Shown: positions 1 through 52,636 of the stretch, one piece after another | How the letters are laid out: every line of letters starts with the position of its first letter | Position numbering within the stretch: position 1 is the stretch's first letter | The notes under the pieces: model-generated | What the model was told of the DNA's origin: nothing | What the model saw: the letters and a program-made list of their open reading frames with translations, nothing else | The model's database searches: none | Virus record (IMG/VR): IMGVR_UViG_3300031951_000003 | Span: 257,140 to 321,139 of that record | Reading direction: 5' to 3' (one strand) | DNA length: 64,000 bases | Position numbers and translations under genes: made by a program

Positions 1-172
1 TGTATTACGTGAACATCTACCACATCAATACCATTGTTCTCAAGGTATTTTTTCATCGCAATAGCAGTAGTTACACCATCTAAATCTTGGTGGAAATATA
101 TTTCAGCCTTCGGGTATCTTTTTCTTAATGCGGAAATATCTCTTAAACCTGTCTCAGTTATTAGGTTCTTCA

Positions 173-544
173 TTAATATTTCAGAGTCAACAAGTATTTC
201 GATTTATTAATCAAACCTAACATTTCATCTCTTAGATTCAATAAATCTGTATCATATCTCGAGTCCAATTGGTCAGAGATTCCAACTAAAAATTCTGTGA
301 TTCCGTCCATGAAATTCTGAATACTTAACTTACTGATGTCTTGAAACATCAATCCAAACTCAGGTTCAAATTCAGGTCTACCATACTTTCCCATCATGGT
401 TTCAGTGAACTCATCAATGAGACCATCTAATCCCTCATAAATTGCACCGTAGGTTTTATGTTTTGCATCACCAAACGTCTGCCAGTGTAAAAATCTCCAT
501 TGAATTTGGATTTGGACTAATTTTTTTATCAATTCTTCTTTCAT
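173..544 (-). CDS. Dps/ferritin-like four-helix protein (DUF5856-type)
   Basis: LHWQT..HK..G..YE.L..LIDEF.E..MGKYGR and DLLNLRDEML..INK.KYLL resemble the Dps/ferritin-like helices seen in phages. Confidence 0.6.
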   Translation of the reverse strand: MKEELIKKLVQIQIQWRFLHWQTFGDAKHKTYGAIYEGLDGLIDEFTETMMGKYGRPEFEPEFGLMFQDISKLSIQNFMDGITEFLVGISDQLDSRYDTDLLNLRDEMLGLINKSKYLLTLKY

Positions 545-559
545 ATAATTTAAATATTA

Positions 560-1774
560 CTAAGGTAAAGGATTTAACGAACCCGAAAACATATTACTAA
601 ACATGTTTTGAACTGGATTATTTTCTTTCGGTTTTTCAGATGAACTTTGAGGTTTGTAAGCACCAGAACCAAAAAGAGGTTGAATTTGCCCATACCCTAC
701 TTTACCTGAACCACCATCTTGACCTGCATCAGCGTTTATTGCTTGGTTAAAGTCCGACTCAAAATTATTTTGAGCTTCTTCTGTTTTATTATAGTTTTCC
801 ATATTTTTCAGAAGTTCGTCTTCACCAATTTTAGCCGCCAATTCATCGGGTCCGACAAAATTTGCAATATTCATATAATCTAATAATCCCATCCACCATT
901 TTGTTTGTCTCATTAAACTTCTTACGGATGCATTTCTATTCAATAGTTGAGGCATTCCTCTGAAAACACTTTTCCAAGACAAAATTCCTTTGGTTGTTCT
1001 ATAACCTGAAAATAAACCTGGTGCTTCTTTAGCTAGTTTGGTAAGTTCTTCGAGTGCCGCTAGTTGTTTAGCTTTTGACCATACTCCAACAGATGTAGTT
1101 GCAGTTTTCAATCCTGTCATACCCCTCACTATTTCTTGACCTGTTTTTCTCAAAGGTGCTGTTGCTTTATTATAATTAGCGAATAAATCAAACCATTGTA
1201 AAACAGTTTTCTTTAACCCTCCCATCAATGGCATCGGAACTCTTTCGATATATCCTCTTAACTTACCAGCGATTTTACTGAAAGCTGAAACAAATCTTCC
1301 TGTCACACCACCCATCGCGGTTATATTATCAAGCATTTTAGCCGCTTCGGCTGTTTTTCCTGCTTCAACCAAGGCGGTAACTTTTCTCAAATTCTTCACG
1401 CCAGGACCACCAATTTTGAGGGCTGCCATCATAGGTTTGGCAACGATGTCTCCAGCATATGGTAAAGCTGAAATGATTGATAATAATCCGAATAATTTAT
1501 CTCCTTGTTTCAAATAAGAGATACCGTTTACTAAATCAACTACCCCTGTTGGGTCAAAAATTCCAACGATATCACCAAGGGTGTTATACCACTTTGCTTC
1601 GTTTACTAATTTACCCTTTGATGGATATAGAACACACAGTGTTTCGACGATTTGTTTTTTTTCCTCTTTGGAAAACTTTGACCAACTTTCTTCGGCAAGC
1701 CTATAATTGTCTTGCTTGAGAATTTCTAAATTCAAAAGTTGGAGTTGTTTTTCAGAAATTATAAATTCTGCCAT
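560..1774 (-). CDS. Putative virion (head/ejected) protein
   Basis: 404-aa ORF with N-terminal IISE motif and a late-type ATATTTATA upstream. Contains a PT-TG-like segment GIFDPTGVVDLVNGISY...LSIISALPYAGD. Confidence 0.5.
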   Translation of the reverse strand: MAEFIISEKQLQLLNLEILKQDNYRLAEESWSKFSKEEKKQIVETLCVLYPSKGKLVNEAKWYNTLGDIVGIFDPTGVVDLVNGISYLKQGDKLFGLLSIISALPYAGDIVAKPMMAALKIGGPGVKNLRKVTALVEAGKTAEAAKMLDNITAMGGVTGRFVSAFSKIAGKLRGYIERVPMPLMGGLKKTVLQWFDLFANYNKATAPLRKTGQEIVRGMTGLKTATTSVGVWSKAKQLAALEELTKLAKEAPGLFSGYRTTKGILSWKSVFRGMPQLLNRNASVRSLMRQTKWWMGLLDYMNIANFVGPDELAAKIGEDELLKNMENYNKTEEAQNNFESDFNQAINADAGQDGGSGKVGYGQIQPLFGSGAYKPQSSSEKPKENNPVQNMFSNMFSGSLNPLP

Positions 1775-1810
1775 GGATACTTTTTCTTATAAATATCCCT
1801 CGGATATAAA

Positions 1811-1833
1811 AAAAGGAGGTTAGACCTCCTTTT
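1811..1833 (-). terminator. Intrinsic terminator after the methyltransferase operon
   Basis: AAAAGGAGGT-TAG-ACCTCCTTTT hairpin followed by a T-run on the minus strand. Confidence 0.6.
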
Positions 1834-2683
1834 CAAAATCAAGTTCTGGTTGATTTTTTTTATCTATAAAATGTTGAACTCTTTTTCGAGCGACTTCCGC
1901 ATAATTAGGACTGAGTTCAATCCCTATCCACCTTCTATCTAATATCTCTGCCGCACATGCACTTGTTCCACTTCCCATGAATGGGTCAAGAACCAAATCG
2001 TTCTTATAGGTTAATATTTTTATGGCTTTCGCTGGAATATCCATTGAGAAGGTTGCCTTGGTAAGTTGTTTTGTATCAGCGAAATAGTCCCATTGACCAT
2101 ATACTAAATCCATAAACTCACGTTTTTGCTCCTCAGTATACATTGTCTTATTTCTTTTTTTTCCATCCTCACTCTCGATTTCCTCAACAACTCCAACCCA
2201 TTGCGGCTCCCCCTTAATCTTTTTGATTCTATCTTTTTTATATGCTAAAATCACACATTCTTTCGGATTGTAGATATAAGGAGAGGACGGTGACATCCAT
2301 GAGCCCCAAGCAGTGGTCTTACTTCTATGTGGTGAGTTTTCATTCAGGTCAACCAGTCCGTAAAACTTATAACCAATTTTTTGCATGATTGACCATAATT
2401 CCGAAACCATGAAAATTCTCCCACCTTTATCTTGTCTATTGATTTCATAAGGTATGTTCAGGGCAATTCTTCCGTCGTCTTTCAAAAGTCTGAAAGCTTG
2501 GGTCAACCATTTTTTTGAAAATTCCTTGTAATCTTCAAATTGAACGTCGTCGTCATGAACATCGTATTCGATTCCAACACCATACGGTGGTGATGTTACA
2601 ATTAAATCAATTGATTTCTCAGGTAGGGTCTTCATGACTTCAACACAATCTCCTTGAGTTATTTTTCTTATATAATTTTCCAT
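1820..2683 (-). CDS. DNA N4-cytosine/N6-adenine methyltransferase, beta class
   Basis: DLIVTSPPY catalytic motif precedes the VLDPFMGSGT SAM-binding motif. Confidence 0.9.
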   Translation of the reverse strand: MENYIRKITQGDCVEVMKTLPEKSIDLIVTSPPYGVGIEYDVHDDDVQFEDYKEFSKKWLTQAFRLLKDDGRIALNIPYEINRQDKGGRIFMVSELWSIMQKIGYKFYGLVDLNENSPHRSKTTAWGSWMSPSSPYIYNPKECVILAYKKDRIKKIKGEPQWVGVVEEIESEDGKKRNKTMYTEEQKREFMDLVYGQWDYFADTKQLTKATFSMDIPAKAIKILTYKNDLVLDPFMGSGTSACAAEILDRRWIGIELSPNYAEVARKRVQHFIDKKNQPELDFEKEV

Positions 2684-3084
2684 TACAACTTTCCCTCTTG
2701 TTTCATTTGTTCTCTAATCTTTGTTGCAGAGATATCATGAATGTCCTGAGGTGGAACATGTTCAATAATATCATAACCTACTCCTCTTCCAAAATTGACA
2801 GATTCAATATCGGGTATGACAATTACTTTTACCGTTTGGTCACTGAGCAATTGCCATAATTCTTTTTTTATGTTCGCCTCAACTTCTTGAGCGGAAAAAG
2901 GATTTTTTTCATCAGGGGCAATATCCCTAATACAAATCAAAACATTTTTACCTTCGTTGAGTCTTTGGTCAATCAACCATCTGTGTCCAGCATGCCACGG
3001 TTGCCATCTTCCGATAAACATGGAATACTGTTTTGCCCCCGTGTTTTTTAACTTAGGGTCACCCTCTACGTGAATTTTTTGCAT
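2683..3084 (-). CDS. HIGH-family nucleotidyltransferase (NMNAT/cytidylyltransferase-like)
   Basis: FIGRWQPWHAGH and C-terminal ISATKIRE motifs. Confidence 0.8.
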   Translation of the reverse strand: MQKIHVEGDPKLKNTGAKQYSMFIGRWQPWHAGHRWLIDQRLNEGKNVLICIRDIAPDEKNPFSAQEVEANIKKELWQLLSDQTVKVIVIPDIESVNFGRGVGYDIIEHVPPQDIHDISATKIREQMKQEGKL

Positions 3085-3508
3085 AGTCTAAAACTTTTTT
3101 TGCAGATACCTCAACACTTTCATTTGTGGTGTCGATACTAAGATATCTTTCGGTAGGTGCCTCATATTCTTTAACAAAGAAACTTTCTCTTCCTCTTACC
3201 TCTGTTGTATGAATATAAACCTCAACCATATTATCCCCCATCTTCTGTTTGAACTTGTCTCGTTGGTCTTTGTAAGGGGAAACCAACGATACTAATACAT
3301 CTTTACCTTTGTTGTGAAGGTATTGAGCGATTTGTTGTGCGAGTTCTATGTTCTTTCTTCTCCCTGTTTCAGAATAATCTTTATTATCGAATAAATCTCT
3401 TAGGTCATCACCGTCGATATGAAATATTCTATGGTCTCTAATGTCCAAGATTTCGTTACAGATTGTTGTTTTGCCAGCACCAGGCTGTCCTGTTAACCAG
3501 TATATCAT
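3059..3508 (-). CDS. cysC: Adenylylsulfate (APS) kinase-like protein
   Basis: IYWLTGQPGAGKTT P-loop, HIDGDDLR, DYSETGRRKNI, VSLVSPY, YEAP. Confidence 0.8.
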   Translation of the reverse strand: MIYWLTGQPGAGKTTICNEILDIRDHRIFHIDGDDLRDLFDNKDYSETGRRKNIELAQQIAQYLHNKGKDVLVSLVSPYKDQRDKFKQKMGDNMVEVYIHTTEVRGRESFFVKEYEAPTERYLSIDTTNESVEVSAKKVLDYAKNSRRG

Positions 3509-3687
3509 TTTTTGTCCTCCAATTGTTTTATTCTCAATTCATTAACGAATGATGAACCCATCCAAAGAAGTGTAATGAACTGCCAAGTAAAGTCTTTACC
3601 ATCAATAAAAGAAAGTATTATCGAACCTATCACACCAATAAAACCTAACAAGAAACAGGTCTTTGCTAGTAAACTCAATTTATTCAT
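3505..3687 (-). CDS. Small membrane protein
   Basis: Two hydrophobic segments; in operon with overlapping start/stop codons. Confidence 0.55.
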   Translation of the reverse strand: MNKLSLLAKTCFLLGFIGVIGSIILSFIDGKDFTWQFITLLWMGSSFVNELRIKQLEDKK

Positions 3688-3907
3688 TTTCTAAATTTTG
3701 TATTTTTCGGTTTAAGTAAAATGAAGCCTTTTTGAGGTCTTCTAATTCTTTTGAAGAATCTTTTTTACCGGCTCTTGCAACGTATTTGACTACATTGAAG
3801 AGATATGCATCTTTGTGTAACTCCCAAGCCTCACAAACTTTAATCACCTCGTAAGGATTTTCTTCTCCACCATAATGATTCGGGTGGTTTACCATTTCTT
3901 TACTCAT
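3680..3907 (-). CDS. DUF3310 family phage protein
   Basis: VNHPNHY...NVVKYVARAGKK...EDLKKA.FYL signature. Confidence 0.8.
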   Translation of the reverse strand: MSKEMVNHPNHYGGEENPYEVIKVCEAWELHKDAYLFNVVKYVARAGKKDSSKELEDLKKASFYLNRKIQNLENE

Positions 3908-4110
3908 TATCTAGCATTTAAAGTTGAATCTGAGATTTGACTGTGATTTGTGGGATATGAATCCAATTCTTTTTTTATGAACTCTTCTTGGATGTGATTT
4001 TGATTTTCATAGTTAACCAAATAAATTATAATTGTTACCCAAGAAGCTAACAAAATAGACAAGTATATTTTAAGTCCATCATCTAATTTGTTCATTTTTT
4101 TGAGCCCCAT
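3907..4110 (-). CDS. Small membrane protein
   Basis: One TM segment; coupled to its neighbour. Confidence 0.45.
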   Translation of the reverse strand: MGLKKMNKLDDGLKIYLSILLASWVTIIIYLVNYENQNHIQEEFIKKELDSYPTNHSQISDSTLNAR

Positions 4111-4222
4111 TTGTTTTCCATGTATTCAATATATCTATGAGTCTTATTTCCATTATACAACATCCATACAATGTAATAGTCAAACCACCAATCTATTTTT
4201 TTTAATATTTTTTTCAATGTAA

Positions 4223-4411
4223 TTAAATTTCTTCTACGTTTTGAACGTGAAAGTCTTCACCTCCTGATGTTTCTTTTTGCCAATGGTCGTCATTGTCATC
4301 AATCTCACCACTCTCAACCATTTCGATTGCCTCATCTTCAGTCTCGGCTTCAACGGTGTAGGTGACATATTCATCAATAGTTCTCACACCTACGATTGTG
4401 AATCTTTTCAT
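4223..4411 (-). CDS. Hypothetical acidic phage protein
   Basis: YTVEAETEDEAIEMV motif typical of small phage ORFs. Confidence 0.6.
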   Translation of the reverse strand: MKRFTIVGVRTIDEYVTYTVEAETEDEAIEMVESGEIDDNDDHWQKETSGGEDFHVQNVEEI

Positions 4412-4412
4412 A

Positions 4413-4628
4413 TTATAAAAAGTATTTTTGTAATGTTTCTAATTTATCATCGGCATCCACCAACATTTGGAGTGCTTCTTCAGCATTTTTATAGAAATCT
4501 CCTGTAGAGTGGTCTCCAATTCCTGATGCATGATTTGATAACAATTCCAAAGTAAGTAATGCTTTGGCTTTTTGTGCTTCAGCTTCTAAACGAAGCATTT
4601 CGATTAAATGATTCTTAACGTTTCCCAT
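4413..4628 (-). CDS. Hypothetical protein
   Basis: Tiled in operon; helical. Confidence 0.6.
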   Translation of the reverse strand: MGNVKNHLIEMLRLEAEAQKAKALLTLELLSNHASGIGDHSTGDFYKNAEEALQMLVDADDKLETLQKYFL

Positions 4629-4861
4629 TATTGTTTGTTTTTATGTTTTTCAGATTTTTGACCCTTCTTGTAGGGTTTCTTTTCTACTTGTTCGGTTACT
4701 TGCTCTGTAGTTTTAGTTTTACGGTTTACAAGTTTCCATTCTGATTTGGGAATATATGCCCACATACTCCCAACCATGTTGTAAGCGGTTTTGTCATCAA
4801 CTCTTTTGATGTCACCGACCTCAACGTCTTTCGATGCTTTTAAAGCTTTAATACACTTCAT
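4628..4861 (-). CDS. Hypothetical basic protein
   Basis: Tiled in operon. Confidence 0.6.
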   Translation of the reverse strand: MKCIKALKASKDVEVGDIKRVDDKTAYNMVGSMWAYIPKSEWKLVNRKTKTTEQVTEQVEKKPYKKGQKSEKHKNKQ

Positions 4862-5060
4862 TGGTTTTTTCCTCCATGTTTTTTATAGTTAATAGAATTT
4901 CTTTTTCGTTTTTTCCACTTTTGTAATATTCATAAACTTTTGAACTCAGTTCATCTTCAAAAATTAACATATCACTTTTTCCATAATAATCTTTAAGACT
5001 ATTGTTTTCAAGTGCTTTCAATGTGTATTCAGCTGAAATAATTCTTTTGTTGAATCCCAT
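4848..5060 (-). CDS. Hypothetical protein
   Basis: TATTTTTG promoter-like motif just upstream. Confidence 0.6.
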   Translation of the reverse strand: MGFNKRIISAEYTLKALENNSLKDYYGKSDMLIFEDELSSKVYEYYKSGKNEKEILLTIKNMEEKTNEVY

Positions 5061-5078
5061 AAAACAAAAATAATAATT

Positions 5079-5858
5079 TTATAGTTCAGAGTCAAAATTA
5101 TTTATTTTTTCTAAATTAACAATCTGAAAAACGTATGCCATTATTTTTCTTTTCATTATGGGTAAGAAAGTTTCCTCCATTGGGAAATCATTCGTGGACT
5201 TCAATTCAAAAATAGGTAAATCTTTAAAATGTTCTTCTTCATTCCAAGTTGAGAAGGTTTCTATAATTGAGTTCAACGTTACATCACTTGGTAATGTGTT
5301 GTATATGAGGTTTAAATAAATTTTACTATTGAAATTCTCGTTCTCGGGTTTTTTTATTTCATATTCCCAAATGAAAATTTCATTCAAGGATTTTTTGAAA
5401 TAGTAAACATACCCCTTCCCCGCGGCTAAATTATTTTTATTTCTTTTGAGACTGAGGTCCATGTGGTCGTAAGCCATGTTCCAAATTGACTTAGCCATAT
5501 TGAAGGCGTCAAATAATTTGTTACCAGAATATTTGATTGTCTTGTCAAGTTCATTGGATTCAGAATCACTTAATTGTCTTGGTTTTTTTTGAACCAATTC
5601 TTTAAGAAGAATCTCATCATCACATGACTCGAATGTCTTATTTGTAAGTAGTAACCTATTTTCTTTGACAAGTGATTGTATGTTAGCCAAATGAAGTGAA
5701 AGTTCTACAAAGTCAGGATAAATTTGTAGATTGTTGAAATTGTTTTCGCACTTCTGAAGGTAATCCAATAAAGTATATTTGTTGTATTCGAAGTCAACAG
5801 GTTTTTTCAACATCCAATCGGGCTTCAATCTGAACGGTTGTTTCTTTTGTCTAGCCAT
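5079..5858 (-). CDS. Hypothetical protein
   Basis: 259-aa ORF with no recognised motif. Confidence 0.65.
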   Translation of the reverse strand: MARQKKQPFRLKPDWMLKKPVDFEYNKYTLLDYLQKCENNFNNLQIYPDFVELSLHLANIQSLVKENRLLLTNKTFESCDDEILLKELVQKKPRQLSDSESNELDKTIKYSGNKLFDAFNMAKSIWNMAYDHMDLSLKRNKNNLAAGKGYVYYFKKSLNEIFIWEYEIKKPENENFNSKIYLNLIYNTLPSDVTLNSIIETFSTWNEEEHFKDLPIFELKSTNDFPMEETFLPIMKRKIMAYVFQIVNLEKINNFDSEL

Positions 5859-9771: not shown

Positions 9772-10615
9772 ATTCATCAACATATTATCCGATATTTTAT
9801 CTGAAGCTAAAAGATATAAATTCACACCTGAATTACTACAAAAAATTAATTCGGTCGTAGAAAACCTTTGGAATGACCGAAACAAAAATTACGGTAATAA
9901 GAAAGAGGTTGTTGATGTTATCCCCTTCAAAACTGCAAATGGTGTTGACGGTTTGGTAAAAGTGATTGTTAATCCAAGATTGAAATACTTGGGATTTATG
10001 GGAACTAAACCGAGTAAATCTTATGACCCCGCAGACATTTATATCGAGGTAAATCCAAAATATTACGAATCTAAGAAAAATCTTTATCTTACAATCTATC
10101 ATGAGATGATACACGCCAGTGACCCAACTCAAAGTAGTTCTTGGTCTCCAAAATATATGTTGAGCTATGATGAAAAGTCTGATGAAAAGTATTGGGGTCA
10201 TCCAATAGAATTCTTTGCGATATCAAATGAGTTCTTGGAAGGTCTTGTAAGAGAATTTGAAAGAAGAGCAAAAAGATTAAGAAAAATTGAAAACAAAGAG
10301 ATTTTGGATAAGTCTTTGAAAAATATTCTCAACTATTTTGCCAAGGGTGAGCCATTAAATAAGCTCAGTCAAGACATTCTTTTCAGAATCAATGACGAAC
10401 ACGTAGGACAAGATTCATTCAAAGTTCTTAAGAATCTGACCGCAGATATGCCCCATTTGGCGGACTTACTTCCTGAAAGAGGTGAGGAACCATATTATTT
10501 ACACTATGTCGAATTGATTAAGAAATTTAATCCTGAAATATGGAAAAAGTTCCTAAGTATGTTCTACAATACAACTTTCGAGATTAGAGACATTATCAAC
10601 AAAAACTATAAATAA
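9764..10615 (+). CDS. Putative zincin metallopeptidase
   Basis: TIYHEMIHASD (HExxH) plus downstream HPIEFFA; ILSE N-terminal motif. Confidence 0.55.
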   Translation: MPKFINILSDILSEAKRYKFTPELLQKINSVVENLWNDRNKNYGNKKEVVDVIPFKTANGVDGLVKVIVNPRLKYLGFMGTKPSKSYDPADIYIEVNPKYYESKKNLYLTIYHEMIHASDPTQSSSWSPKYMLSYDEKSDEKYWGHPIEFFAISNEFLEGLVREFERRAKRLRKIENKEILDKSLKNILNYFAKGEPLNKLSQDILFRINDEHVGQDSFKVLKNLTADMPHLADLLPERGEEPYYLHYVELIKKFNPEIWKKFLSMFYNTTFEIRDIINKNYK

Positions 10616-10644
10616 AAAAAAGGGATTTTTAAATCCCTTTTTTT
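10614..10644. terminator. Bidirectional intrinsic terminator between convergent operons
   Basis: A-run, AGGGATTT-TT-AAATCCCT, T-run. Confidence 0.75.
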
Positions 10645-12971
10645 CCGCTTGCTAACATTTCCAATTTTTCTAATTTCCTTTCATGGAAATCTAAAAGGGT
10701 GGATTGTTCTTTGATTGCCTCTAAACAAGCTGATATAATCGTTTCAAATCTTATTGATAACATTGTGGTTTCTGGGTCTTCATAAACGAGTTCAGGAAAT
10801 ACCAACTGCAACTCTTGTGCAATAAAACCTATCTGAAGTAACTCGGGTCTTTCATCATCTTTTATTAGATGGTAGGAAACACCTCTAGTCTTTAATATTT
10901 TGTCCAAACTATCTGTAATTGGTCTGATATTAGTTTTGAACCTTAAATCCGATGGTCCAGGTGCACCTGATGCACCTTGTGCCCCTGTTGGTCCTGTGCC
11001 ACCTTGTGGACCAGTTCCACCACCTCCACCTTGAGCACCTTGTGGACCTGTTCCTCCTGTTCCACCACCAGTCCCTTGAGCACCTTGATTACCCGTAGGA
11101 CCGGTTGGTCCTCCAGGACCTTGAGCACCTTGTGCACCTTGGTTTCCATTACCTTGTGATGGACCTTGGGCTCCTTGAGAACCAGTTCCACCTCCTCCAC
11201 CAGGAGGTCCTGTGTGACCTTGAGCTCCCTGTGGACCTCGGTTACCCGTTGGTCCGCCAGGACCCTGAGCACCTTGTGCTCCGCCAGGACCCTGAGCACC
11301 TTGTCCACCTTGAGAACCTTGAGCTCCTTGAGCTCCTGTTGCACCACCACCACCTTGAGAACCTTGTCCTCCCTGTGAACCTTGGGCTCCTTGGTTTCCA
11401 CCACTGCCTTGAGCTCCTTGCGCACCTTGTCCTCCTGCCGGTCCTTGTGCTCCTTGGTTACCTTTACCACCTTGAGCTCCTTGCGCACCTTGTCCTCCTG
11501 CCGGTCCTTGTGCTCCTTGGGCTCCTCCTGGGCCTTGAGCTCCTTGCGCACCTTGTCCTCCTGTTGGTCCCTGAGCTCCTTGGTTACCTTTACCACCTTG
11601 TGCTCCTTGAGCACCTTGTCCTCCTTGAGAACCTTGTGAACCTGTGGCACCTACAGGCCCCTGTGCTCCTTGTGCTCCCTGTCCACCTTGTGAACCTTGA
11701 CCACCTTTGGCACCTTGTGAACCTTGTCCTCCTTGAGCTCCTTGTCCACCTGTTGGTCCTTGTGCTCCTTGATTACCACCCGAACCTTGCGCTCCTTGAG
11801 CTCCTTGTCCACCTGTTGGTCCTGTAGCACCCTTACCACCTTGAGAACCTTGTCCTCCTTGAGCTCCTTGTCCACCTGTTGGTCCTTGAGCTCCTTGATT
11901 ACCACCCGAACCTTGCGCTCCTTGAGCTCCTTGTCCACCCTGTGAGCCTTGGGAACCTGTGGCACCCGCAGAACCTACTGGACCTTGTGCTCCTTGGCCT
12001 CCCTGCGAACCTTGTGAGCCCGTGGCCCCTTGTGCACCTACTGGCCCTTGAGCTCCCTGTCCACCTTGTGAACCTTGGGAACCTGTGGCTCCTGCTGAAC
12101 CAACGGGACCCTGAGCTCCCTGTCCACCTTGTGAACCTTGTGAACCTATGGCACCTTGTGAACCTTGTCCACCTTGAGCTCCTTGTCCTCCCTGTGAACC
12201 TTGGGAACCTGTAGCTCCTTGTGACCCAACTGGTCCTTGTGCTCCTTGACCTCCTTGTGACCCTTGGGAACCAACCGCTCCCTGAGAACCTGTGGCACCT
12301 TGAGCACCTTGACCTCCTTGTGAACCCTGAGAACCTGTAGCACCTTGTGACCCTACCGGCCCTTGAGCACCTTGTCCACCTTGTGAACCCTGAGAACCGA
12401 CCGCTCCCTGTGAACCTGTGGCACCTTGAGCACCTTGACCTCCTTGTGAACCCTGAGAACCAGTATCGCCTTGTGCACCTATTGCACCCTGAGCACCTTG
12501 ACCACCTTGTGCGCCTTGTGGACCTACAGCACCTTGGGAACCTTGTGAGCCAGTAATACCTTGAGCCCCTGTTGGACCTTGTGCTCCTTGACCCCCTTGT
12601 GAACCTTGAGCACCTTGACCACCTGTCACTCCCTGGGAACCTTGATTTCCTTGAGCACCTTGTCCCCCTTGAAAACCAATACTACCTTGAGCACCAGTTG
12701 GTTCTCTATTACCAACCCATCCTGTAGAGTTGATAAGTGTTCCTGCTGAATTTTTTAAACTAGTTGTTATCTTGAGGTTACTATTGTAAGTTACAAATGA
12801 AGGTTTATCACTTCTCCAAGCAAGATAAACAATATTACTATTATCTGTCCAATGCAAATGTAGTAGTGGTGAATCGTCTTCAAGCTTCAAATATGTTGAG
12901 GTTGAGCCAGAATCAACGAATTCGACCGTGGGAAACGCATAATCAGGATATATTATTATATTTTCAGACAC
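10629..12971 (-). CDS. Collagen-like fibre chain C with C-terminal peptidase S74 chaperone
   Basis: About 194 Gly-X-Y units (aa 93-673), then SDLRFKTNI...IGFIAQE...PELV. Confidence 0.9.
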
Positions 12972-15393
12972 TTAAATTATCTTTTAAAATTTTTATTCTC
13001 TCCATTATTGAGATTATTCTTTTCTGTTGTTCTTGAAGTGCACCAATACCCAAACTTACCATAAGACCATATTCAACTGATTTAAAGCCCTCCTCGTCTG
13101 TCCAAACAACTTCTGGGACGATATCTTCAATTTGCTGTGCAATAAAACCTATTGTTTCACCAGTAAATGCACTTGGAAGAGATATTGCACGGTTCATTGA
13201 TATTTTAGGATGGTCAACCCATTCGAATCTAACACCCTCAATACCTTTAACTTTTTCTAATACATTTGTTAAGGATTGAATATTATCTTTAAGTCTTTGG
13301 TCTGAAGGTGGACCCTGAGCTCCTTGAGCTCCTTGACCTCCTGTTGGACCAGTTCCACCCTGAGGACCTGTAGGTCCTACGTTACCTTGAGCACCTTGAC
13401 CACCTTGGCCCCCACCTGAACCTGTAGCACCTTGGGCACCTTGACCCCCTTGACCACCACCCGAGCCTTGAGCCCCTTGGGCTCCCGTAGCTCCTGGTCC
13501 TCCACCAGGCCCCACTGCTCCTTGGGCACCTTGTCCTCCTGTTCCTCCTGTAGGTCCTGTTGGTCCCTGTGCTCCTTGGAATCCTGTTGCACCTCCCCCT
13601 CCTGTTCCACCTTGAGCCCCAACAGGACCCTGAGCGCCTTGAGCTCCCTGAGCACCACCCTGTGCTCCTTGAGCACCTGTGGAACCACCTCCACCTTGGC
13701 TTCCTTGAGCACCTGTAGTTCCACCTTGAGCTCCTTGAGCACCTGTTGGTCCTTGAGCACCTTGGTTACCTTGTGCACCTTGGTTACCACCTTGAGCTCC
13801 TTGGGCTCCTTGTGAACCTTGGACACCAGGAGCACCTTGTGCACCCGTATTTCCTCCTTGGGCTCCTTGAGCTCCTTGTGAACCTTGGACACCAGGAGCA
13901 CCTTGTGCACCTGTTGAAGCTCCTTGAGCTCCCTGAGCCCCTTGAGAGCCCTGAACACCAGGAGCTCCCTGTGCTCCCGTTGAACCACCTTGAGCTCCTT
14001 GGGCTCCTTGGGCACCCTGATTACCTGTCGCACCTTGGGCACCTGTTGAACCACCTTGAGCACCCTGTGAACCTTGTGCCCCTTGTGCTCCAGTATTACC
14101 TTGAGCTCCTGTATTGGCTCCTTGTGCTCCTTGAGCACCTTGTGGTCCTTGTGCACCTTGGTTTCCTTGTGCACCTGTATTGGCTCCTTGTGCTCCTTGA
14201 GAGCCTTGAGCTCCTTGAGCACCTGTATTACCTTGAGCTCCTGTATTGGCTCCTTGTGCACCTTGAGCACCTTGTGGTCCTTGTGCACCTTGGTTTCCTT
14301 GTGCACCTGTTGAAGCACCCTGTGCACCTTGCGCTCCCTGTCCTCCTTGTGAGCCTTGACCACCTTGAGCACCTGTTGTTCCTCCTTGGGCTCCTTGTGC
14401 TCCTGTTCCACCTTGAGCTCCTTGACCTCCTTGTGCCCCCGTGGTTCCCCCTTGGGCTCCTTGAGCACCCTGTCCTCCTTGTGAACCTTGAGCTCCTTGG
14501 GCTCCTGTTGTTCCTCCTTGTGCTCCTTGAGAACCTTGTGCACCTTGTGCTCCAGTTGAACCCTGAGCACCTGTTGTTCCTCCTTGAGCTCCTTGAGCTC
14601 CTTGTCCTCCTTGTGCCCCCTGTGCACCCTGAGCACCTGTTGTTCCTCCTTGGGCTCCTTGTGCACCTTGTCCTCCTTGGGCTCCTTGTGCACCCTGAGC
14701 ACCTGTATTAGCTCCCTGAGCTCCTTGTGAACCCTGTCCTCCTTGTGCTCCTTGAGCTCCTTGAGCACCAATTGTTCCACCTTGAGCACCTTGAGCACCT
14801 TGTCCTCCTTGTGCACCTTGTGAACCCTGAGCACCTGTGTTAGCTCCTTGAGCACCTTGAGCTCCTTGACCACCTTGAGCTCCTTGACCACCTTGAGCTC
14901 CCGTATCCGCTCCTTGAGCTCCCTGTGCTCCCTGTCCACCCGTAGCACCTTGAGCTCCTTGAGGTCCTATCGAACCTTGTGAACCTTGAGCACCTACATT
15001 TCCTATTGCTCCCTTAGCACCTTGAGAACCTTGCGCTCCTTGAGCACCTATTGACCCCTGAGAGCCTGTAGTTCCTGAAGCACCTTGTGCTCCTTGAGCA
15101 CCGGTAAATCCAGATATACCCTCAGCAGGTCCTACCCATTCGCCAACTTCATTAATCATTTCTATACCACCCACATACAATCCATATATTCCTCCGGTGA
15201 CCTTTGCACCATCAACGAGTAATTCAGCTCCGATAGTTGCTATGTTACTTTTTGTTGTTGATGAAACTTGGATATTTCCAGAACCATTAACAGATAATTG
15301 TATTTTGTCCGCGGATGAAATCCCTTCAAATTCCATATGAGGGTTAGGGTTTCCACCACTTTTACCATTGGGATATATTATAACGTCAGACAT
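12964..15393 (-). CDS. Collagen-like fibre chain B with periodic insertions and S74 chaperone
   Basis: 195 Gly units (aa 92-696), including 20 four-residue units, then SDQRLKDNI...IGFIAQQ...PEVV. Confidence 0.9.
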
Positions 15394-18017
15394 TAATTAA
15401 GAAGGTTTTCAAGTTCATTTATTTGTTTTTCGATATCTGATATAAATACTTGTTGCTCTTTAATACCTTCAATCAAAACGGCGTTCATTCTATTATATTC
15501 AACAGTATAAAAACCATCAGAACCGATTTTAACTACTGTCGGGAAAAATTCTTTAACATTTTGAGCTATCAGACCAATCGAGTGAAGCTTGTTATTGTTT
15601 AATCTTTTAATGTAATCGCTTTTCGTCAACTTTTCATTCCAATCGTATTCTACGACTCTAAGTTCAAGAATTTTTTCAAGTGTATTATCAAGTGATTTAA
15701 CATTATATTTGACTCTTCTATCAGAGCAGCTGCCCCCGTATGTAAAATAACCATTGAAGTTAGTAGAACCATAATACAAATATGTAACACCAATCGTAAT
15801 TGAACCATAGGTCCACTGAAATGTTGAGTTTTGACAAGTTGTAACATCTGAAGCGAGTTGGATGCTAAAATTTGCTTGCCAGTTAATATCTTGGGAATAA
15901 ACTGTTCTGTTTTGACATGCCCCCGCGTTTACACAAATGGCGTAATAAGAATCACCACATAGATTCTGAACAAAACAAGAGGTGAACGAGCCAGGTCCTG
16001 TTGCACCTTGTGCACCTTGGGCTCCTTGTCCTCCCGTAGGACCCGTAGGACCCGTAGGACCACCCGACCCTTGTGCACCTTGGTTACCCGTAGGACCAGT
16101 AGGACCACCTGGTCCTTGTGCACCTTGGTTACCTTGAGGTCCTGTTACACCTGGTGCACCTTGAGCACCTTGACCTCCGTTTGGACCTTTCGGTCCAGCA
16201 GCTCCTTGCGCCCCTTGGCTACCCGTAGCACCCCCACCACCTTGAGGACCTTGAGCACCTTGAGCACCCTGACCTCCTGTTCCACCTTGTGGTCCTGGAG
16301 CACCTTGAGCACCTTGATTTCCTGTTGCTCCTTGTGCACCTGGATGACCTGTAGCACCCTTACCACCCTGTGAACCCTGAGCACCTGTTGCTCCCTGAGG
16401 ACCAATTGCACCTGTATTACCCCCTGCACCTTGTGCACCTTGTGGTCCTGTGGCACCTTGTGCTCCTGGATGTCCTGTTCCTCCACCAGAACCTGTTGGA
16501 CCTTGTGGTCCTGTGGCTCCCTGTGCTCCTGGATGTCCTGTTCCTCCACCTGAACCTTGAGGACCTTGTGGTCCTGTGGCTCCTTGTGCTCCTGGATGTC
16601 CTGTTCCTCCACCCGAACCTGTTGGACCTTGTGGTCCTGTGGCTCCTTGTGCTCCTGTATGACCAACGGCACCTTGAGCACCTTGAGGTCCTGTTGGTCC
16701 TGTTGCTCCTTGAGCTCCTGGATGTCCTGTGGCTCCTTGAGCACCCGTCGAACCTGCATTACCTGTAGCACCTTGAGCACCAGGGTGACCTGTGTTTCCT
16801 GTTGGCCCCTGTGCACCTTGTGGTCCTGTAGCACCTTGAGCACCCGCATGACCCGTCGCACCTTGTGCCCCAGTAGAACCAGCATTCCCCGTAGCACCTT
16901 GTGCACCTGGATGACCTGTATTTCCTGTTGGTCCCTGTGCTCCTTGTGGTCCTGTAGCACCCTGAGCACCAGCATGACCCGTCGCACCTTGTGGTCCTTG
17001 AGCCCCTTGAGGACCTGTAGCACCTTGAGGTCCTACTGCACCTGTAGAACCTGTAGGTCCTTGTGCACCTGTATTACCTGTGGCTCCTTGTGGGCCAACA
17101 TTTCCTTGTGCTCCTGTATTACCTTGTGCTCCTGTGTTACCTGTGGCTCCTTGTGGTCCTACGTTACCTGTAGCCCCGGTAGCTCCCTGAGCCCCTGTGT
17201 TACCTGTGGCCCCTTGTGGTCCAACATTTCCTTGTGCTCCTGTATTACCTTGTGCTCCTGTATTACCTGTGGCCCCTTGTGGACCAACATTTCCTTGTGC
17301 TCCTGTATTACCTTGTGCTCCTGTGTTACCTGTAGCTCCTTGAGCACCTGTATGACCCTGTGCACCTGTATTTCCTTGTGCTCCTGTATTACCTGTGGCC
17401 CCTTGTGGTCCAACATTTCCTTGAGCTCCCGTGTTACCTTGCGCTCCTGTGTTACCTGTGGCTCCTTGTGCACCTGTATTACCCTGTGCACCTGTATTTC
17501 CTTGTGCACCGGTATTTCCCGTGGCTCCTTGTGCACCTGTATTACCCTGTGCACCCTGGGTTGTGCCTTTAGCACCCTGTGCCCCTTGGGGTCCAACCTG
17601 ACCTTGTGCACCTGTATCACCTTGTGCACCTTGTATTCCTTGTAACCCTTGTGCACCCAAATTTCCCTGTGCACCCGTATCACCCTGTGCACCTGTATTG
17701 CCCTGCGCACCTTGGTGACCCTGAGCCCCTTGAGCTCCTGCAATACCTGTGGTTGGTCCAATCCAATCCAAAGTTCCATCAATTACTTGAACTGAGTCAA
17801 TAGCAAAATAATCAGAAACATTAAGCGTTACAACACCAATTGTTTGGCTAGAACGGTCAATAACTAATTGATTAGTAACTGATGCTGAGCTAAGATTAAT
17901 CTTACCCGTTGGCACAACTCTCCAAACACTTGTTCCACTGTTAACCCAATTTATATAAGGGACTCTGTCTGGTGTTCTAGAAATGGAATTACTCGGAACT
18001 ATTAAAATATCACCCAT
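15393..18017 (-). CDS. Collagen-like fibre chain A with Cys/aromatic tip domain and S74 chaperone
   Basis: 195 Gly units (aa 91-676), an 88-aa tip, then SDRRVKYNV...IGLIAQN...PTVV. Confidence 0.9.
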
Positions 18018-18117
18018 GAATGTTTTTTTCTATTTATATAAATACAAGTTGAATAGAATTTGTATTCATTTTTATTTTGGAAAATTTTATAATTGACACT
18101 ATTATAATTATTAATTT

Positions 18118-18831
18118 ATGACATTAAAAAAAATAGGTAGCAAATCTTACGTTGTAAACTTACTTTCAGACTACATTCTTTCTGAGATATCAACTGAAGA
18201 GAACTCAATAATAAAAGTAATCGACTGTGGTAATTTTTTTGTTATCAAAGGAAAAACCACTTCAAAAGAAGTTTTATTTTTACCAAACATAATTTCTAAA
18301 TTTAATGAGAGATTCGAAATACCCTCTAAACTCACCCATACAATTGACTTAATTGAATATGATTCTGATTTACCTGATGTAAAGTCAATTTCCCACACAT
18401 ACCACAGTAATACCTCCAACTGTTCATATAATCAAACCGAAATCGAAAAAAATGAGATTTCCGAAGAAACTGATGAATTAGTATACGTTTCTTCATTTCC
18501 CCACGGTTATTCCCTAACTCAGGGTAGATTACTTTATTATTATGGGAAAAAAATATTCTACAACATTCCATCCAATTACCTTGTCACGAGTTTGGAATTT
18601 CATCTAACAAATGAGAGAAATGATGAAAATGAATTTGGATTCAGCGTTTACGATGGATTTTACAAAACAAAGGATGAAGTGCTTCGTTCTGCGGTCTTAG
18701 ATATATTTGATTTCAATATGGAGCCAATCGCCAAAGAAATAAAAAAAGTGGATTGGAGTATCGAACTCACAGACCCACTTTACGAATATGATTTTTTGAA
18801 AGAAAAGGTTGAGGGATTTATTATTATATAA
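18118..18831 (+). CDS. Degenerate S-adenosylmethionine synthetase-like protein
   Basis: VNLLSDYIL...FVIKGKTTS resembles MetK CDQISDAIL...VVAGEITT; the canonical catalytic motifs are not seen. Confidence 0.35.
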   Translation: MTLKKIGSKSYVVNLLSDYILSEISTEENSIIKVIDCGNFFVIKGKTTSKEVLFLPNIISKFNERFEIPSKLTHTIDLIEYDSDLPDVKSISHTYHSNTSNCSYNQTEIEKNEISEETDELVYVSSFPHGYSLTQGRLLYYYGKKIFYNIPSNYLVTSLEFHLTNERNDENEFGFSVYDGFYKTKDEVLRSAVLDIFDFNMEPIAKEIKKVDWSIELTDPLYEYDFLKEKVEGFIII

Positions 18832-19123
18832 TACCTAATTTTTTTCTGTGTCCTTGTATAATTTGAATTGCCTCAGTTAATTCATTATAATTTCTTTCTG
18901 GAGCATATAAATGAGGTTCATAATCTTTATCGTCACCTTCGATAATCATCAAAGCTGGAACCATGTCATTTTCCGTCACTTCAGAATACATATTATATTC
19001 TTTGGAATACTCATCGATGTCTCGTTCAAAGAAGTCTATGTTTTCGGTTCTCAACATTTTTTTGAATTCATCACAATGAGGACATCCTTTCATTGTGTAT
19101 ACTATAACGTTTAAATTTTTCAT
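18824..19123 (-). CDS. Glutaredoxin
   Basis: VYTMKGCPHC and VPAL. Confidence 0.85.
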   Translation of the reverse strand: MKNLNVIVYTMKGCPHCDEFKKMLRTENIDFFERDIDEYSKEYNMYSEVTENDMVPALMIIEGDDKDYEPHLYAPERNYNELTEAIQIIQGHRKKLGII

Positions 19124-19124
19124 T

Positions 19125-19448
19125 TTAATCTAAAAGATTTAATACTTCGGGTGCAGTCATGACACCAGGTTTAGAAAACACCTCTTTACCTTCTTTAAAT
19201 ATTTTAATTGTTGGAACACTTCTGATTTGAAGTTCGTTTACGACATACTCTCTATCGGAATCAATATCCAACTTATAGATTGAATACTTGGGTGAACTTG
19301 TTGACTCACTAATCAGGGATTCGTTCACCTTTTCGAGATTGTATAACATTATTTTACAAGGTCCGCACCATGTTGCAAACAAATCCAATACAAAATTTTC
19401 TCCGTTGTTAATTTTTTGTTTAAGTTGTTCCGTTGTTATCTGTTCCAT
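19125..19448 (-). CDS. Thioredoxin
   Basis: FATWCGPCK and IRSVPT. Confidence 0.9.
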   Translation of the reverse strand: MEQITTEQLKQKINNGENFVLDLFATWCGPCKIMLYNLEKVNESLISESTSSPKYSIYKLDIDSDREYVVNELQIRSVPTIKIFKEGKEVFSKPGVMTAPEVLNLLD

Positions 19449-45924: not shown

Positions 45925-48168
45925 TTAAAAATCTAATTTCACTACGTATTGTTGAATACCTTGTCTCAATTCGGGAGACTGTAGCTTAGATATAACAATA
46001 AGGTCTTTATTGGAATCGTAAAGACCAATTTCGGTAACATATGAAGTAGTTCCACTTGTCCATGTTGGGTTAGAAGTGTTAGTGAATTGATTTCTTCCCA
46101 AATTTATCAAGTATCTCATCTCATATATTGTTGCCGAAATATCTGTTGTGAAATTACCATAGAAGTAATACTCATCACCAAAATTCAAATAATCTGTTTG
46201 ATTGTTTGTTGGAATGTCTATGTAAGAGGCGAGGTTATATATATCACTGTTTGTAACTGCACTTTGATACGTTGCCAAATCTATTTGGAATGTTGTGCCT
46301 GTCAATCCTGACATTGTAATATATCCATTAACCGATGAACCAGATATTTGGTCTGTAACATCAATGTATTTCCAATCAGTTGGACTTGGTCTAGTGTCAC
46401 CTGAAACCATTTGACAAAGAATCATCAATGAGTTTGCACAATATCCTGTCAGATTAATAGCCGTAGAAGAAGGTGAAGGTTGATTCAAAAATTGAAACTC
46501 TGGTCCGAATCTGACAGCAACATTTTGACTTGTGTCTGTGCAACCTGTTGAAGGTCCAACAATTTTCGAATAATAATTACAGTGTAATGAATCAGTAAAT
46601 CCTGTATTGTTGAATCTATAGGTTACCCAAAGTGTTTGTGTATCAGCAGTAAGTAAACCTGTGGCGGTTGAGTTGTTCGTGAAACAAGTATTAGGTGCCA
46701 AATAAGAAAGTTTAGGTGCTGATAGAGTCCAGTTTCTATTAGCCTTATAAGACATAGCCGCTATTACCTCCTCATCGTCAATTACAATGGTCTGTGAATC
46801 AGGGAAAACCTTGCCAATTCTATTCAAATTACCATTACTATCAGGATTTGTATCCCAAAGATGATAATAACGAATACCAGGGTCGTTCATATCAATGTTT
46901 TTGGTTGATTTGATATAGTATGGTTTACATAAATCATAACCTGGTGGGTCGATAAAGAATGTTTGACCAATTGTGTTTCCTGTCGACTTATGCCACATCA
47001 AAGTAGGTATTGTAACCTTAAGGTGTCTCGCTAAACCTGTTTGATTCGAAGGGTTCTGTGGGTCATAAGGAATAGTTGAAAACTTCTCGCCATAAACATG
47101 GTCAATATCTTGATTAGTGTAGTGTATGATTGCAATTGCTTTTTGGTCTTGGGGTCTAACAACTACTTTCTCATCAAACGAATTGTAATAAAAAACTTGA
47201 CTTGTATCGGTTTGACCTGAAGGCTCTTGATATCCCAAATATTCTTTAGTCCCGATGTAAGTTACTGAACCGTATTTTGTATAATCTTCATAAGCGTTAC
47301 TGAAAAGACCAGCAGGACTTTCTGACCAAGGAATATTCATGTTCCAAATTAAAGTATTTTCACGGTTTGAAACATCACATGGTGATTCAAAATTAATAGT
47401 GTCAGTCTGCCAATAAGGTGCTGGTGTTATGAAATCATAAAGAACAGTCATACCTGAAGGATATATCAGAACTCTTGCATATTCTCCTGATAATGAAAAA
47501 GAACTTAAATCTGGAACACTTCTATCTAAGGTAAGTGTCCATGGAGTTGTTCCAGAGGTTCCTGTTGAAGGGCTTATGTTTTGAATTTTATATGTGAAAA
47601 CAGGATAGTTACCTACAAAACCTGTAAGTCCTACTCCGAGTATTAATGTAACAAAATCACCTATTGAGGGTGTTCCTGATGATGGCTCGAGTGTAAGTGG
47701 GTTTGTATCTAATTCGATGTCTATCGTTGTTTGACCTGTGAGCGTATCTTGTGCAACCCAATAGTTAGAAGTTATTGTATATGCAGATGAAGTTTGTGCC
47801 GTCCAACTACCTTGAGTTCCTCCCGTCATGAAAAATCCTTTTTCACCAGCAGAATTATAAACTTCTTGAAATGTAGAATCCATGTAAGGTATTCCGTATG
47901 TGTTACCGATACCACCCTGAACATAGTAAGGATATTTCACATTTTCTTTGTTGGACTGAGGGGAACCTGTGTCATTTTGAGCATTGAAATCAGGCATCAA
48001 AATGTTATTATTAGTTTGATTATAGTTAGGAACGGCCTGATAATTAACTTCACTATCCCCTATTTGGAAATAAGAAATGTTGAAATTCCCTTGTGATATC
48101 TTTCTACGACCAACGTCAGTTAATCTTGTGTTAATTAGACCCGAAGTATTTTTAATTATATAAGCCAT
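45925..48168 (-). CDS. Putative baseplate/tail structural protein
   Basis: N-terminal TRLTDVGRRKI..G...YFQIGDSE and C-terminal VTEIGLYD...LIVISKL resemble baseplate/fibre-attachment proteins. Confidence 0.55.
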   Translation of the reverse strand: MAYIIKNTSGLINTRLTDVGRRKISQGNFNISYFQIGDSEVNYQAVPNYNQTNNNILMPDFNAQNDTGSPQSNKENVKYPYYVQGGIGNTYGIPYMDSTFQEVYNSAGEKGFFMTGGTQGSWTAQTSSAYTITSNYWVAQDTLTGQTTIDIELDTNPLTLEPSSGTPSIGDFVTLILGVGLTGFVGNYPVFTYKIQNISPSTGTSGTTPWTLTLDRSVPDLSSFSLSGEYARVLIYPSGMTVLYDFITPAPYWQTDTINFESPCDVSNRENTLIWNMNIPWSESPAGLFSNAYEDYTKYGSVTYIGTKEYLGYQEPSGQTDTSQVFYYNSFDEKVVVRPQDQKAIAIIHYTNQDIDHVYGEKFSTIPYDPQNPSNQTGLARHLKVTIPTLMWHKSTGNTIGQTFFIDPPGYDLCKPYYIKSTKNIDMNDPGIRYYHLWDTNPDSNGNLNRIGKVFPDSQTIVIDDEEVIAAMSYKANRNWTLSAPKLSYLAPNTCFTNNSTATGLLTADTQTLWVTYRFNNTGFTDSLHCNYYSKIVGPSTGCTDTSQNVAVRFGPEFQFLNQPSPSSTAINLTGYCANSLMILCQMVSGDTRPSPTDWKYIDVTDQISGSSVNGYITMSGLTGTTFQIDLATYQSAVTNSDIYNLASYIDIPTNNQTDYLNFGDEYYFYGNFTTDISATIYEMRYLINLGRNQFTNTSNPTWTSGTTSYVTEIGLYDSNKDLIVISKLQSPELRQGIQQYVVKLDF

Positions 48169-48198
48169 TACGAATAAATATTTGTCATCCTTTTTTTA

Positions 48199-51048: not shown

Positions 51049-51079
51049 TAATTTATAATTATCTTTTCCATTTTTTTAT

Positions 51080-52420: not shown

Positions 52421-52635
52421 GCTACATAAGTTACTCCTGAGATTATGCAATTCTGCGAATCAATTACTTTCAACATGTAAGCCAGTCCAGTATCATATGG
52501 TTGTGGTATATCAAAATCATATGGAAGAGTTGTTATAGTATTAATATAAAAGCAACCACTACCGTTTGGTTGACAGATATAAATGTCAAATGGTGATTGT
52601 CCTGTTATACCATTTATTGTAACTTGAACTGCCAT
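52417..52635 (-). CDS. Small paralog of the N-terminal domain of 51080-52420
   Basis: P.DIY.C...G..C......T.P..F..P.PY......IK..D...CI is shared. Confidence 0.7.
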   Translation of the reverse strand: MAVQVTINGITGQSPFDIYICQPNGSGCFYINTITTLPYDFDIPQPYDTGLAYMLKVIDSQNCIISGVTYVA

Positions 52636-52636
52636 C

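Follow-up and report, generated by a model that had tools for sequence, protein, structure and literature searches.

Three adjacent collagen-like genes of a freshwater jumbo phage share a seven-unit interruption lattice and may encode a heterotrimeric fibre

We analysed a 64,000-nucleotide stretch of DNA (the window), which is the last 64 kb of the 321,139-bp IMG/VR virus record IMGVR_UViG_3300031951_000003, a genome that has direct terminal repeats, is rated complete and belongs to a contractile-tailed freshwater jumbo phage of 321 kb. Three genes lying head to tail on the minus strand, here called A, B and C, encode chains that each consist of an N-terminal domain (N-domain) of ~90 amino acids (aa), a collagen domain and a Peptidase_S74 (S74) domain. 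In this genome chain B has one residue too many at every seventh collagen unit, 20 times in succession, and in related phages some of these positions are instead filled by a chain C that is one residue too short. Considering the co-variation of chain lengths, the lattice that runs across the chains and the duplications that the three genes have in common, A, B and C probably wind into a single 1:1:1 ABC triple helix. An ABC helix carrying a seven-unit lattice of chain mismatches is the overall explanation that we favour, although with more reserve, and the hypothesis that the resulting kinks sum to a curvature of the fibre is put forward only tentatively.

Periodic four-residue units in chain B

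The collagen domain of chain B is made up of 175 triplets and 20 four-residue units (GADT, five GANT, GGTI, six GGTT, two GAST, two GGST, GGNT, GGNQ and GGAQ). Translation bears out the claim of an earlier sequence-based note (the original prediction) that these units recur at an exact 22-aa spacing, as they start at residues 161, 183 and so on to 579 (array 161-582) and the gap is 22 aa in 19/19 cases. The span given for them in that prediction, 13420-14913, is correct at its upper end, whereas the bound at 13420 lies about 75 residues beyond the last four-residue unit, the lattice itself covering 13648-14913. Its statement that the partner chains keep an uninterrupted 21-aa period agrees with our data, in which the DNA period is 63 bp (21 aa) in genes A and C versus 66 bp in gene B, with two exceptions, namely a single four-residue unit in chain A (GTTQ at residue 151, outside the array) and one irregular GPSQGN near the C-terminus of chain C. 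Tandem Repeats Finder (TRF) reports the array in gene B as 19.3 copies of a 66-bp unit. The 20 units share on average 72% nucleotide and 77% amino-acid identity, and they differ at 51% of third codon positions versus 15-17% at positions 1 and 2; this level of identity, together with third positions near saturation, indicates that the array is old and that its spacing has been kept. Two of the 66-bp units are 98% identical, and identical genes are present in seven independent IMG/VR assemblies from different metagenomes.

The extra residue had been described as mostly Thr, and 17 of the 20 four-residue units of this genome do end in Thr. Across the family, however, the unit reads G-[AG]-[NVTS]-[TQ] between highly conserved flanks (GAQ-GAQ-[4-mer]-GAQ), and its last residue is T in 53% and Q in 38% of cases, with mostly Q in whole lineages such as L070, L075 and L066. 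Because this last residue resembles an ordinary Y-position residue, the third one (N/V/T/S) is a likelier candidate for the extra residue than the Thr.

Conservation and polarity of the lattice in related phages

A degenerate DNA pattern for GAQGAQG--TGAQG detected 44 stretches in IMG/VR, many of which contain matches spaced at multiples of 66 bp. Related loci were then collected with a profile of the B N-domain, by which 24 loci with 10-kb flanks were fetched, so that the sample is independent of the insertion itself. The three-gene module was identified in 18 distinct related phage contigs (referred to by L numbers). A, B and C orthogroups were recovered consistently by N- and C-terminal domain typing, exactly one gene of each type is found in 18/18 trios, and the A-B-C order and the flanking synteny are the same in 15/15 loci compared for context. 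The B gene occurs in lake or freshwater metagenomes from at least a dozen studies.

Insertions randomly spaced or absent in orthologues had been named in the original prediction as one of the outcomes fatal to it, and what we found instead is that B occupies 309 of 366 lattice points. Chain B is interrupted every 7 units in every orthologue, or every 14 over parts of L062 and L077, and the lattice is kept where N-domains are merely 28-55% identical. Spacings of 6 and 8 in B arise where a lattice point is spanned by a 7-mer such as GAQ-SSVQ. Seven lineages, among them that of the genome under study, have unit 24 as their first lattice point. An exhaustive HMMER search of full-length B against 1.8 billion representatives was swamped by generic collagen, and its matches were used as a negative control: a dominant 7-unit spacing of four-residue units is absent from all of the 150 best unrelated collagen-like matches (0/150). 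The internal repeat periods of the unrelated proteins are scattered, and those of the family are all 7, 14 or 21, except for two values of 13 in chain C that are an effect of how 5-mers are counted. A word-indexed protein search gave no match for the B N-domain and two weak matches for the B S74 region.

Lattice points left vacant by B are matched, at an identical unit index, by a 5-mer in chain C, G-x-S-P-x, which counts as two units less one residue (Table 1). Such C interruptions fall on vacant B points 18 times versus 1.74 expected (p<5e-5, L066 excluded). The interruptions have a polarity, being +1 in 330 of 340 cases in B and -1 in 30 of 50 cases in C, and the net residue excess ranges from +8 to +43 in B, from -1 to +4 in A and from -9 to +4 in C (mostly <=0). 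When the three chains of the genome under study are aligned by unit index from the N-terminus, they have an in-phase 7-unit period over units 25-157: GAT directly follows the lattice unit in chain A in 19/19 rows, and GGQ-GAQ is found at phases 5-6 of the 7-unit rows in chain C in 18-19 of 19 rows.

The three genes also appear to have a joint history. Their row-by-row nucleotide identity matrices correlate (Mantel r=0.40, 0.30 and 0.63; p<=0.001), and a recent 14-unit duplicate, rows 88 and 102, is common to A (90%), B (98%) and C (98%). The presence of the same recent duplicate in all three genes indicates parallel, selected length changes rather than ancestral inheritance. In L066 (3780-12589) the N-domain types are cyclically permuted, N_A being joined to the B-type chain, N_C to the A-type chain and N_B to the C-type chain, with each type present once, an arrangement that would fit a pseudo-threefold heterotrimer. 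The B-type chain of L066 has in addition a 241-aa globular insert after four triplets. An origin of the shared 7-unit phase entirely from the gene that preceded the triplication was considered and rejected, as the lengths, the recent duplicates and the B/C swaps are all post-triplication.

Co-variation of collagen domain lengths

Each collagen domain was parsed independently, with a 3-mer counted as one unit, a 4-mer as one unit plus one residue, a 5-mer as two units minus one residue and a 7-mer as a triplet followed by a Gly-less 4-mer. The domains of the 18 trios comprise between 98 and 346 units, and the unit numbers of A and B agree closely (r=0.999; difference <=1 in 15/18 trios), to an extent that 0 of 100,000 permutations matched, while B is longer than A by 7-59 residues in all 18 trios. 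It is thus the unit count, not the residue count, that is kept between the chains, which places the extra B residues outside the register count. Chains with an A-type N-domain contain globular inserts of 92-241 aa within the collagen domain in four lineages, and despite these inserts the summed units still match (e.g., 139/140/139 in L076). The chain A inserts of L076 (6927-9998), L075 (2253-6485) and L078 (5479-9987), 92-221 aa in length, have no Pfam match. Co-variation of units, complementarity of B and C and co-located duplications all argue, strongly if indirectly, for the starting point of the original prediction, namely a putative heterotrimer in which only B carries the insertion.

Contigs from Logan were also compared with the arrays, inside which they were too fragmented to test length variants. 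In one of them, obtained from a freshwater run of 2017, exactly 126 bp (14 units) of the gene C array are missing at 12286-12411, with a depth equal to that of the remaining phage sequence; the gap could reflect a length variant in the population or, alternatively, a collapse of the graph.

Domain organization of the three chains

The chains score 243 (A), 115 (B) and 136 bits (C) with the Pfam Collagen family (PF01391, cut-off 27.2), contain about 193-195 Gly-started units each by our parse, and are predicted from sequence to fold as a triple helix in this region. The collagen domains (10950-17747) have 2-6 charged residues per ~600 and 2.8-7.7% Pro, and their helices would be without the imino-acid and salt-bridge stabilisation thought to be general for collagens. 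The S74 domains (PF13884; 52.3, 48.8 and 60.0 bits for A, B and C versus a cut-off of 22) are the only three copies in the genome and match in sequence the long-tail-fibre tip of phage S16 (PDB 6f45); the self-cleavage motif S-D-x-R-x-K is present in all three and kept in orthologues. Pfam scans detected no C1q domain in A, B or C. The N-domains are 24-27% and the C-terminal domains 31-34% identical among the chains, which identifies A, B and C as old paralogues. An AlphaFold2 (AF2) model of the B N-domain (predicted local distance difference test, pLDDT, 71) had no significant fold match in PDB.

Chain A differs from the other two in a Cys-rich tip domain placed before S74. In 17 relatives this domain is hypervariable and 78-94 aa long, its Cys count is always even (6-14), and its first and last Cys are invariant, a pattern suggestive of a single looped-out, disulfide-closed distal domain. 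Its AF2 model had a pLDDT of 80, with just 1 of 5 models good, and no significant PDB match. Only chain A has such a tip, and it is probably the receptor-binding end of the fibre. A receptor-binding role at the tail would fit the hypervariable tip; placement as head fibres or whiskers is equally possible. In L072 (7867-10005), chain A is without the Cys-rich tip and its collagen leads directly into S74, so that there is no distal domain on any chain.

Table 1. Positions of the A, B and C genes, their domains and associated signals in the window, and lattice points filled by chain C in related phages
Feature	Position	Strand	Remarks
Gene A	15393-18017	-	874 aa
Gene B	12964-15393	-	809 aa (translated)
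Gene C	10629-12971	-	780 aa, GTG start
Chain A N-domain	17748-18017	-	
Chain A collagen domain	15990-17747	-	195 units
Chain A Cys-rich tip domain	15726-15989	-	residues 677-764, 88 aa; between collagen and S74
Chain A S74 domain	15393-15725	-	SDRRVK
Chain B N-domain	15121-15393	-	
Chain B collagen domain	13306-15120	-	195 units, 605 aa, residues 92-696
Four-residue units G-x-x-T/Q of chain B (20)	13648-14913	-	units 24, 31, ... 157; exact 22-aa (66-bp) period
Chain B S74 domain	12964-13305	-	SDQRLK
Chain C N-domain	12696-12971	-	
Chain C collagen domain	10950-12695	-	194 units
Chain C S74 domain	10629-10952	-	SDLRFK
AT-rich intergenic spacer upstream of gene A	18018-18117	-	100 nt; presumed promoter region of the putative A-B-C operon
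Intrinsic-terminator-like hairpin	10614-10645	-	14-bp stem, then T run; overlaps C stop codon, would mark operon end
C-filled lattice points, L062	units 45, 59, 73, 87, 101, 115		
C-filled lattice points, L077	units 52 to 136		seven points
C-filled lattice points, L076	units 66, 94		
C-filled lattice points, L070	units 234, 241		
C-filled lattice point, L026	unit 88		
C-filled lattice points, L066			three points, constant offset 3

Genomic context

The GC content is ~33% outside the A-B-C region versus 46-54% within it. The stop of A and the start of B overlap by 1 nt, and the end of B shares 8 nt with the GTG start of C; these overlaps and the terminator-like hairpin after C suggest that the three genes form one operon. 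A promoter scan of the spacer upstream of A gave consensus matches only, and the gene beyond the spacer (18118-18831) is divergent from gene A. A 262-nt metatranscriptome contig from Logan crosses the A/B junction without differences and lends weak support to co-transcription of A and B, DNA carry-over being possible. A T4-type tail-sheath homologue is encoded in the genome, far from the putative operon. Megablast and tblastn against cultured phages revealed no close relative, only S74 and sheath matches of <45% identity, and the nearest database relatives are <30% identical.

Pfam and PHROG scans of the neighbouring genes mostly gave no match. A short way upstream of the putative operon (18824-19448, minus strand) lie a thioredoxin-like (107 aa) and a glutaredoxin-like (99 aa) gene, which accompany it in conserved synteny in almost every relative; they might be connected with the disulfide-rich chain A tip or, equally possibly, serve nucleotide metabolism. 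A fourth, very different collagen-like gene (62998-64000) continues across the genome ends (3-5420 in genome coordinates) and passes through the 344-bp direct terminal repeat; its open frame of >1,806 aa, in which two short globular islands interrupt what are otherwise nearly all GTS/GSS triplets, is without an S74 domain. On the plus strand (57283-61907), a GT9-like glycosyltransferase gene is followed by a gene for a 1,229-aa fusion of FkbM methyltransferase, GT1 and GT9, and both are candidate modifiers of virion or host glycans that are not syntenic with the fibre genes. A row of very large genes (747, 949, 456 and 1,433 aa; 45925-56938, minus strand) has almost no family matches, and a SprB repeat in one of them may hint at a Bacteroidota-type host surface.

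A model of the fibre

In an ABC fibre, the N-domains would be beta-rich anchors, and the S74 domains would trimerise, nucleate folding from the C-terminus and then self-cleave at their S-D-x-R-x-K motif, with heterotrimeric domains at the N- and C-terminal ends keeping the helix in register. About 195 units would correspond to a fibre of about 168 nm if helical. Along this helix would run a 7-unit (~6 nm) lattice with exactly one chain off by one residue at each point, always B (one residue too long) in this genome and sometimes C (one too short) in relatives. As the other two chains are uninterrupted, the mismatch would be absorbed locally as a bulge or kink, that is, as an 'incommensurate interruption'. 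Register-swapping of the chains in place of a bulge was rejected on geometry, since +1 in one chain puts two Gly rows level.

The seven triplets (~6 nm) after which, according to the original prediction, a chain returns to the same face are one true repeat of the 7/2 helix (PMC3933592). Given a period equal to one 7/2 supercoil repeat and a fixed polarity, the effects of the mismatches could accumulate into a directional bend, and the outcome might be a preferred bend, an arc, a shallow coil or direction-dependent hinges. This polarity (long B, short C, neutral A) favours a directional bend; a rough and unverified geometry allows 0 to ~28 degrees per site, i.e., a fibre anywhere from straight to coil. 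The period of 7 throughout the family is also a hint as to helix symmetry. The most far-reaching version, which we regard as possible but rather doubtful, is a genetically encoded collagen 'shape code', in which a long outer B and a short inner C would bend the ~170-nm helix into an arc or spring with a mismatch once per supercoil turn, and in which the period of 7 would reveal 7/2 symmetry in an imino-poor, uncharged helix.

Several points weigh against this interpretation. Imino-poor peptides lean to 10/3 over 7/2 symmetry (PMC3933592), and with 10/3 symmetry a period of 7 units would leave the bulges out of azimuthal alignment; it is also conceivable that the extra residue just loops out and causes no bend. 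All the contigs belong to a single clade of related large phages and count as only partly independent. Two chains break the agreement of lengths, chain A of L077 being 15 units and chain C of L078 74 units short, which may be due to repeat collapse in assembly or to a real mismatch. Furthermore, those S74 fibres that have been characterised are as a rule presented as homotrimers (PMC12220804), a composition also stated for the collagen-like proteins of prokaryotes (PMC8968730). A complex prediction on the three C-terminal regions returned no answer and was counted neither way.

Alternative explanations

The published descriptions just mentioned would favour homotrimers A3, B3 and C3, i.e., three fibres of matched length, possibly bundled, with a commensurate (G3G) break in B3 that would make it a jointed, flexible fibre. 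An identity of just 24-34% among the S74 and N-domains of the three chains is likewise what would be expected of diverged independent fibres. We nevertheless consider such an arrangement unlikely, because it leaves unexplained why units rather than residues are matched, why the deletion in C coincides in unit index with skipped B lattice points, why an insert-split A chain has as many summed units as B and C, and why one gene of each type is present in all 18 trios. In B3, six triplets of imino-poor uncharged helix would separate breaks in all chains, probably with marginal stability, and B3 and C3 fibres would have no distal domain after S74 cleavage.

It is also conceivable, with a distinctly low probability, that the lattice serves to control assembly or register and not the shape of the fibre, acting against out-of-register or wrong-composition zipping of featureless (GAQ)n chains. 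Being almost uncharged, the chains are without the salt-bridge 'clamps' proposed for collagen folding (PMC11923368), and the conserved flanks of the four-residue units and the invariant triplets at fixed lattice phases in A and C would agree with such a device. However, slips by 7 units would escape a mark that recurs with strict periodicity, zipping from C to N should be slowed and not guided by a bulge, and a register device does not require a fixed polarity of long B and short C.

The original prediction further suggested that the inserted positions form a row of aligned modification sites on one face, such as O-glycosylated Thr, an idea that our results weaken to the point where we hold it to be very improbable. 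Most units end in Thr in this genome, Thr glycosylation stabilises some Hyp-free collagens (PMC11923368), and glycosyltransferase and methyltransferase genes do occur in the window; but the Thr is often replaced by Gln in relatives, no such Thr is present at lattice points of the C type (G-x-S-P-x), Y-position Thr is in any case frequent all along chain A, and the glycosyltransferases are 40 kb distant and outside the conserved synteny. Finally, we give hardly any credence to the exact spacing being a frozen by-product of 66-bp tandem duplication without a function of its own, for although the TRF array and the pair of nearly identical units point to ongoing duplication, the spacing is perfect in spite of near-saturated third codon positions, persists among orthologues with such divergent N-domains, and lost B points are replaced in C.

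Comparison with known collagens and phage fibres

Fibres combining collagen and S74 are common in phages and other viruses, where they are described as homotrimers (PMC12220804, PMC3368898). EPclA of an E. coli O157 prophage (PMC3368898) and the fibres of polinton-like viruses (PLV; PMC12220804) have the same N-domain/collagen/S74 plan and presumed virion-fibre role as the A, B and C chains, whereas they are encoded by single genes, and no three-gene module, length co-variation or periodic single-chain interruption has been reported for them. Literature searches yielded no description of an A-B-C module with periodic interruption. Bacterial Scl1/2 and BclA, the latter Thr-rich, resemble the phage chains in being Hyp-free triple helices; unlike the proposed fibre, they are homotrimers (PMC8968730), much shorter and free of periodic breaks. 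Animal type IV and FACIT collagens are like the phage fibre in having interruptions of unequal length ('incommensurate') within one helix, which are thought to give kinks or flexibility and for which there is no solved structure (PMC11923368). In these collagens, however, the interruptions vary widely in length and follow no regular spacing, Pro/Hyp and salt bridges abound in the chains, and it is the NC1/NC2 domains that serve to select the chains.

If the model is true, the phage fibre would be the first mixed-chain (ABC) collagen known outside animals and a simple system, provided by nature, in which small N- and C-terminal domains control chain selection and register. The view that prokaryotic and viral collagens are homotrimers limits their use as models or materials for heterotrimeric human collagens (PMC8968730). 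With 20 identical incommensurate interruptions per molecule, the fibre would suit averaging in electron microscopy, and chains nearly without Pro and charges challenge ideas on how a long triple helix is stabilised and guided. Within the family, fibre length would range from ~85 to 300 nm, tuned in steps of 7 or 14 triplets in three genes in parallel.

The nearest functional analogue is C1q, in which the interruption is an extra residue in one chain. Both systems have three paralogous chains encoded by three adjacent genes and an ABC helix, which is proven in C1q and proposed here for the phage. For C1q, an interruption that differs between chains was proposed to kink the stalk (Kilchherr et al. 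1985, as cited in PMC11923368). There is one kink per stalk in C1q, whereas the phage fibre would have 20 on a strict 7-triplet lattice; C1q trimerises by its gC1q domains, in place of which the phage chains have the S74 chaperone; and C1q chains are charged and hydroxylated, whereas those of the phage are uncharged and imino-poor. The phage fibre may thus be C1q-like in principle without being a member of the C1q family: it belongs to the known kind of phage collagen fibres, and what would be new is its putative heterotrimeric composition together with the periodic incommensurate lattice.

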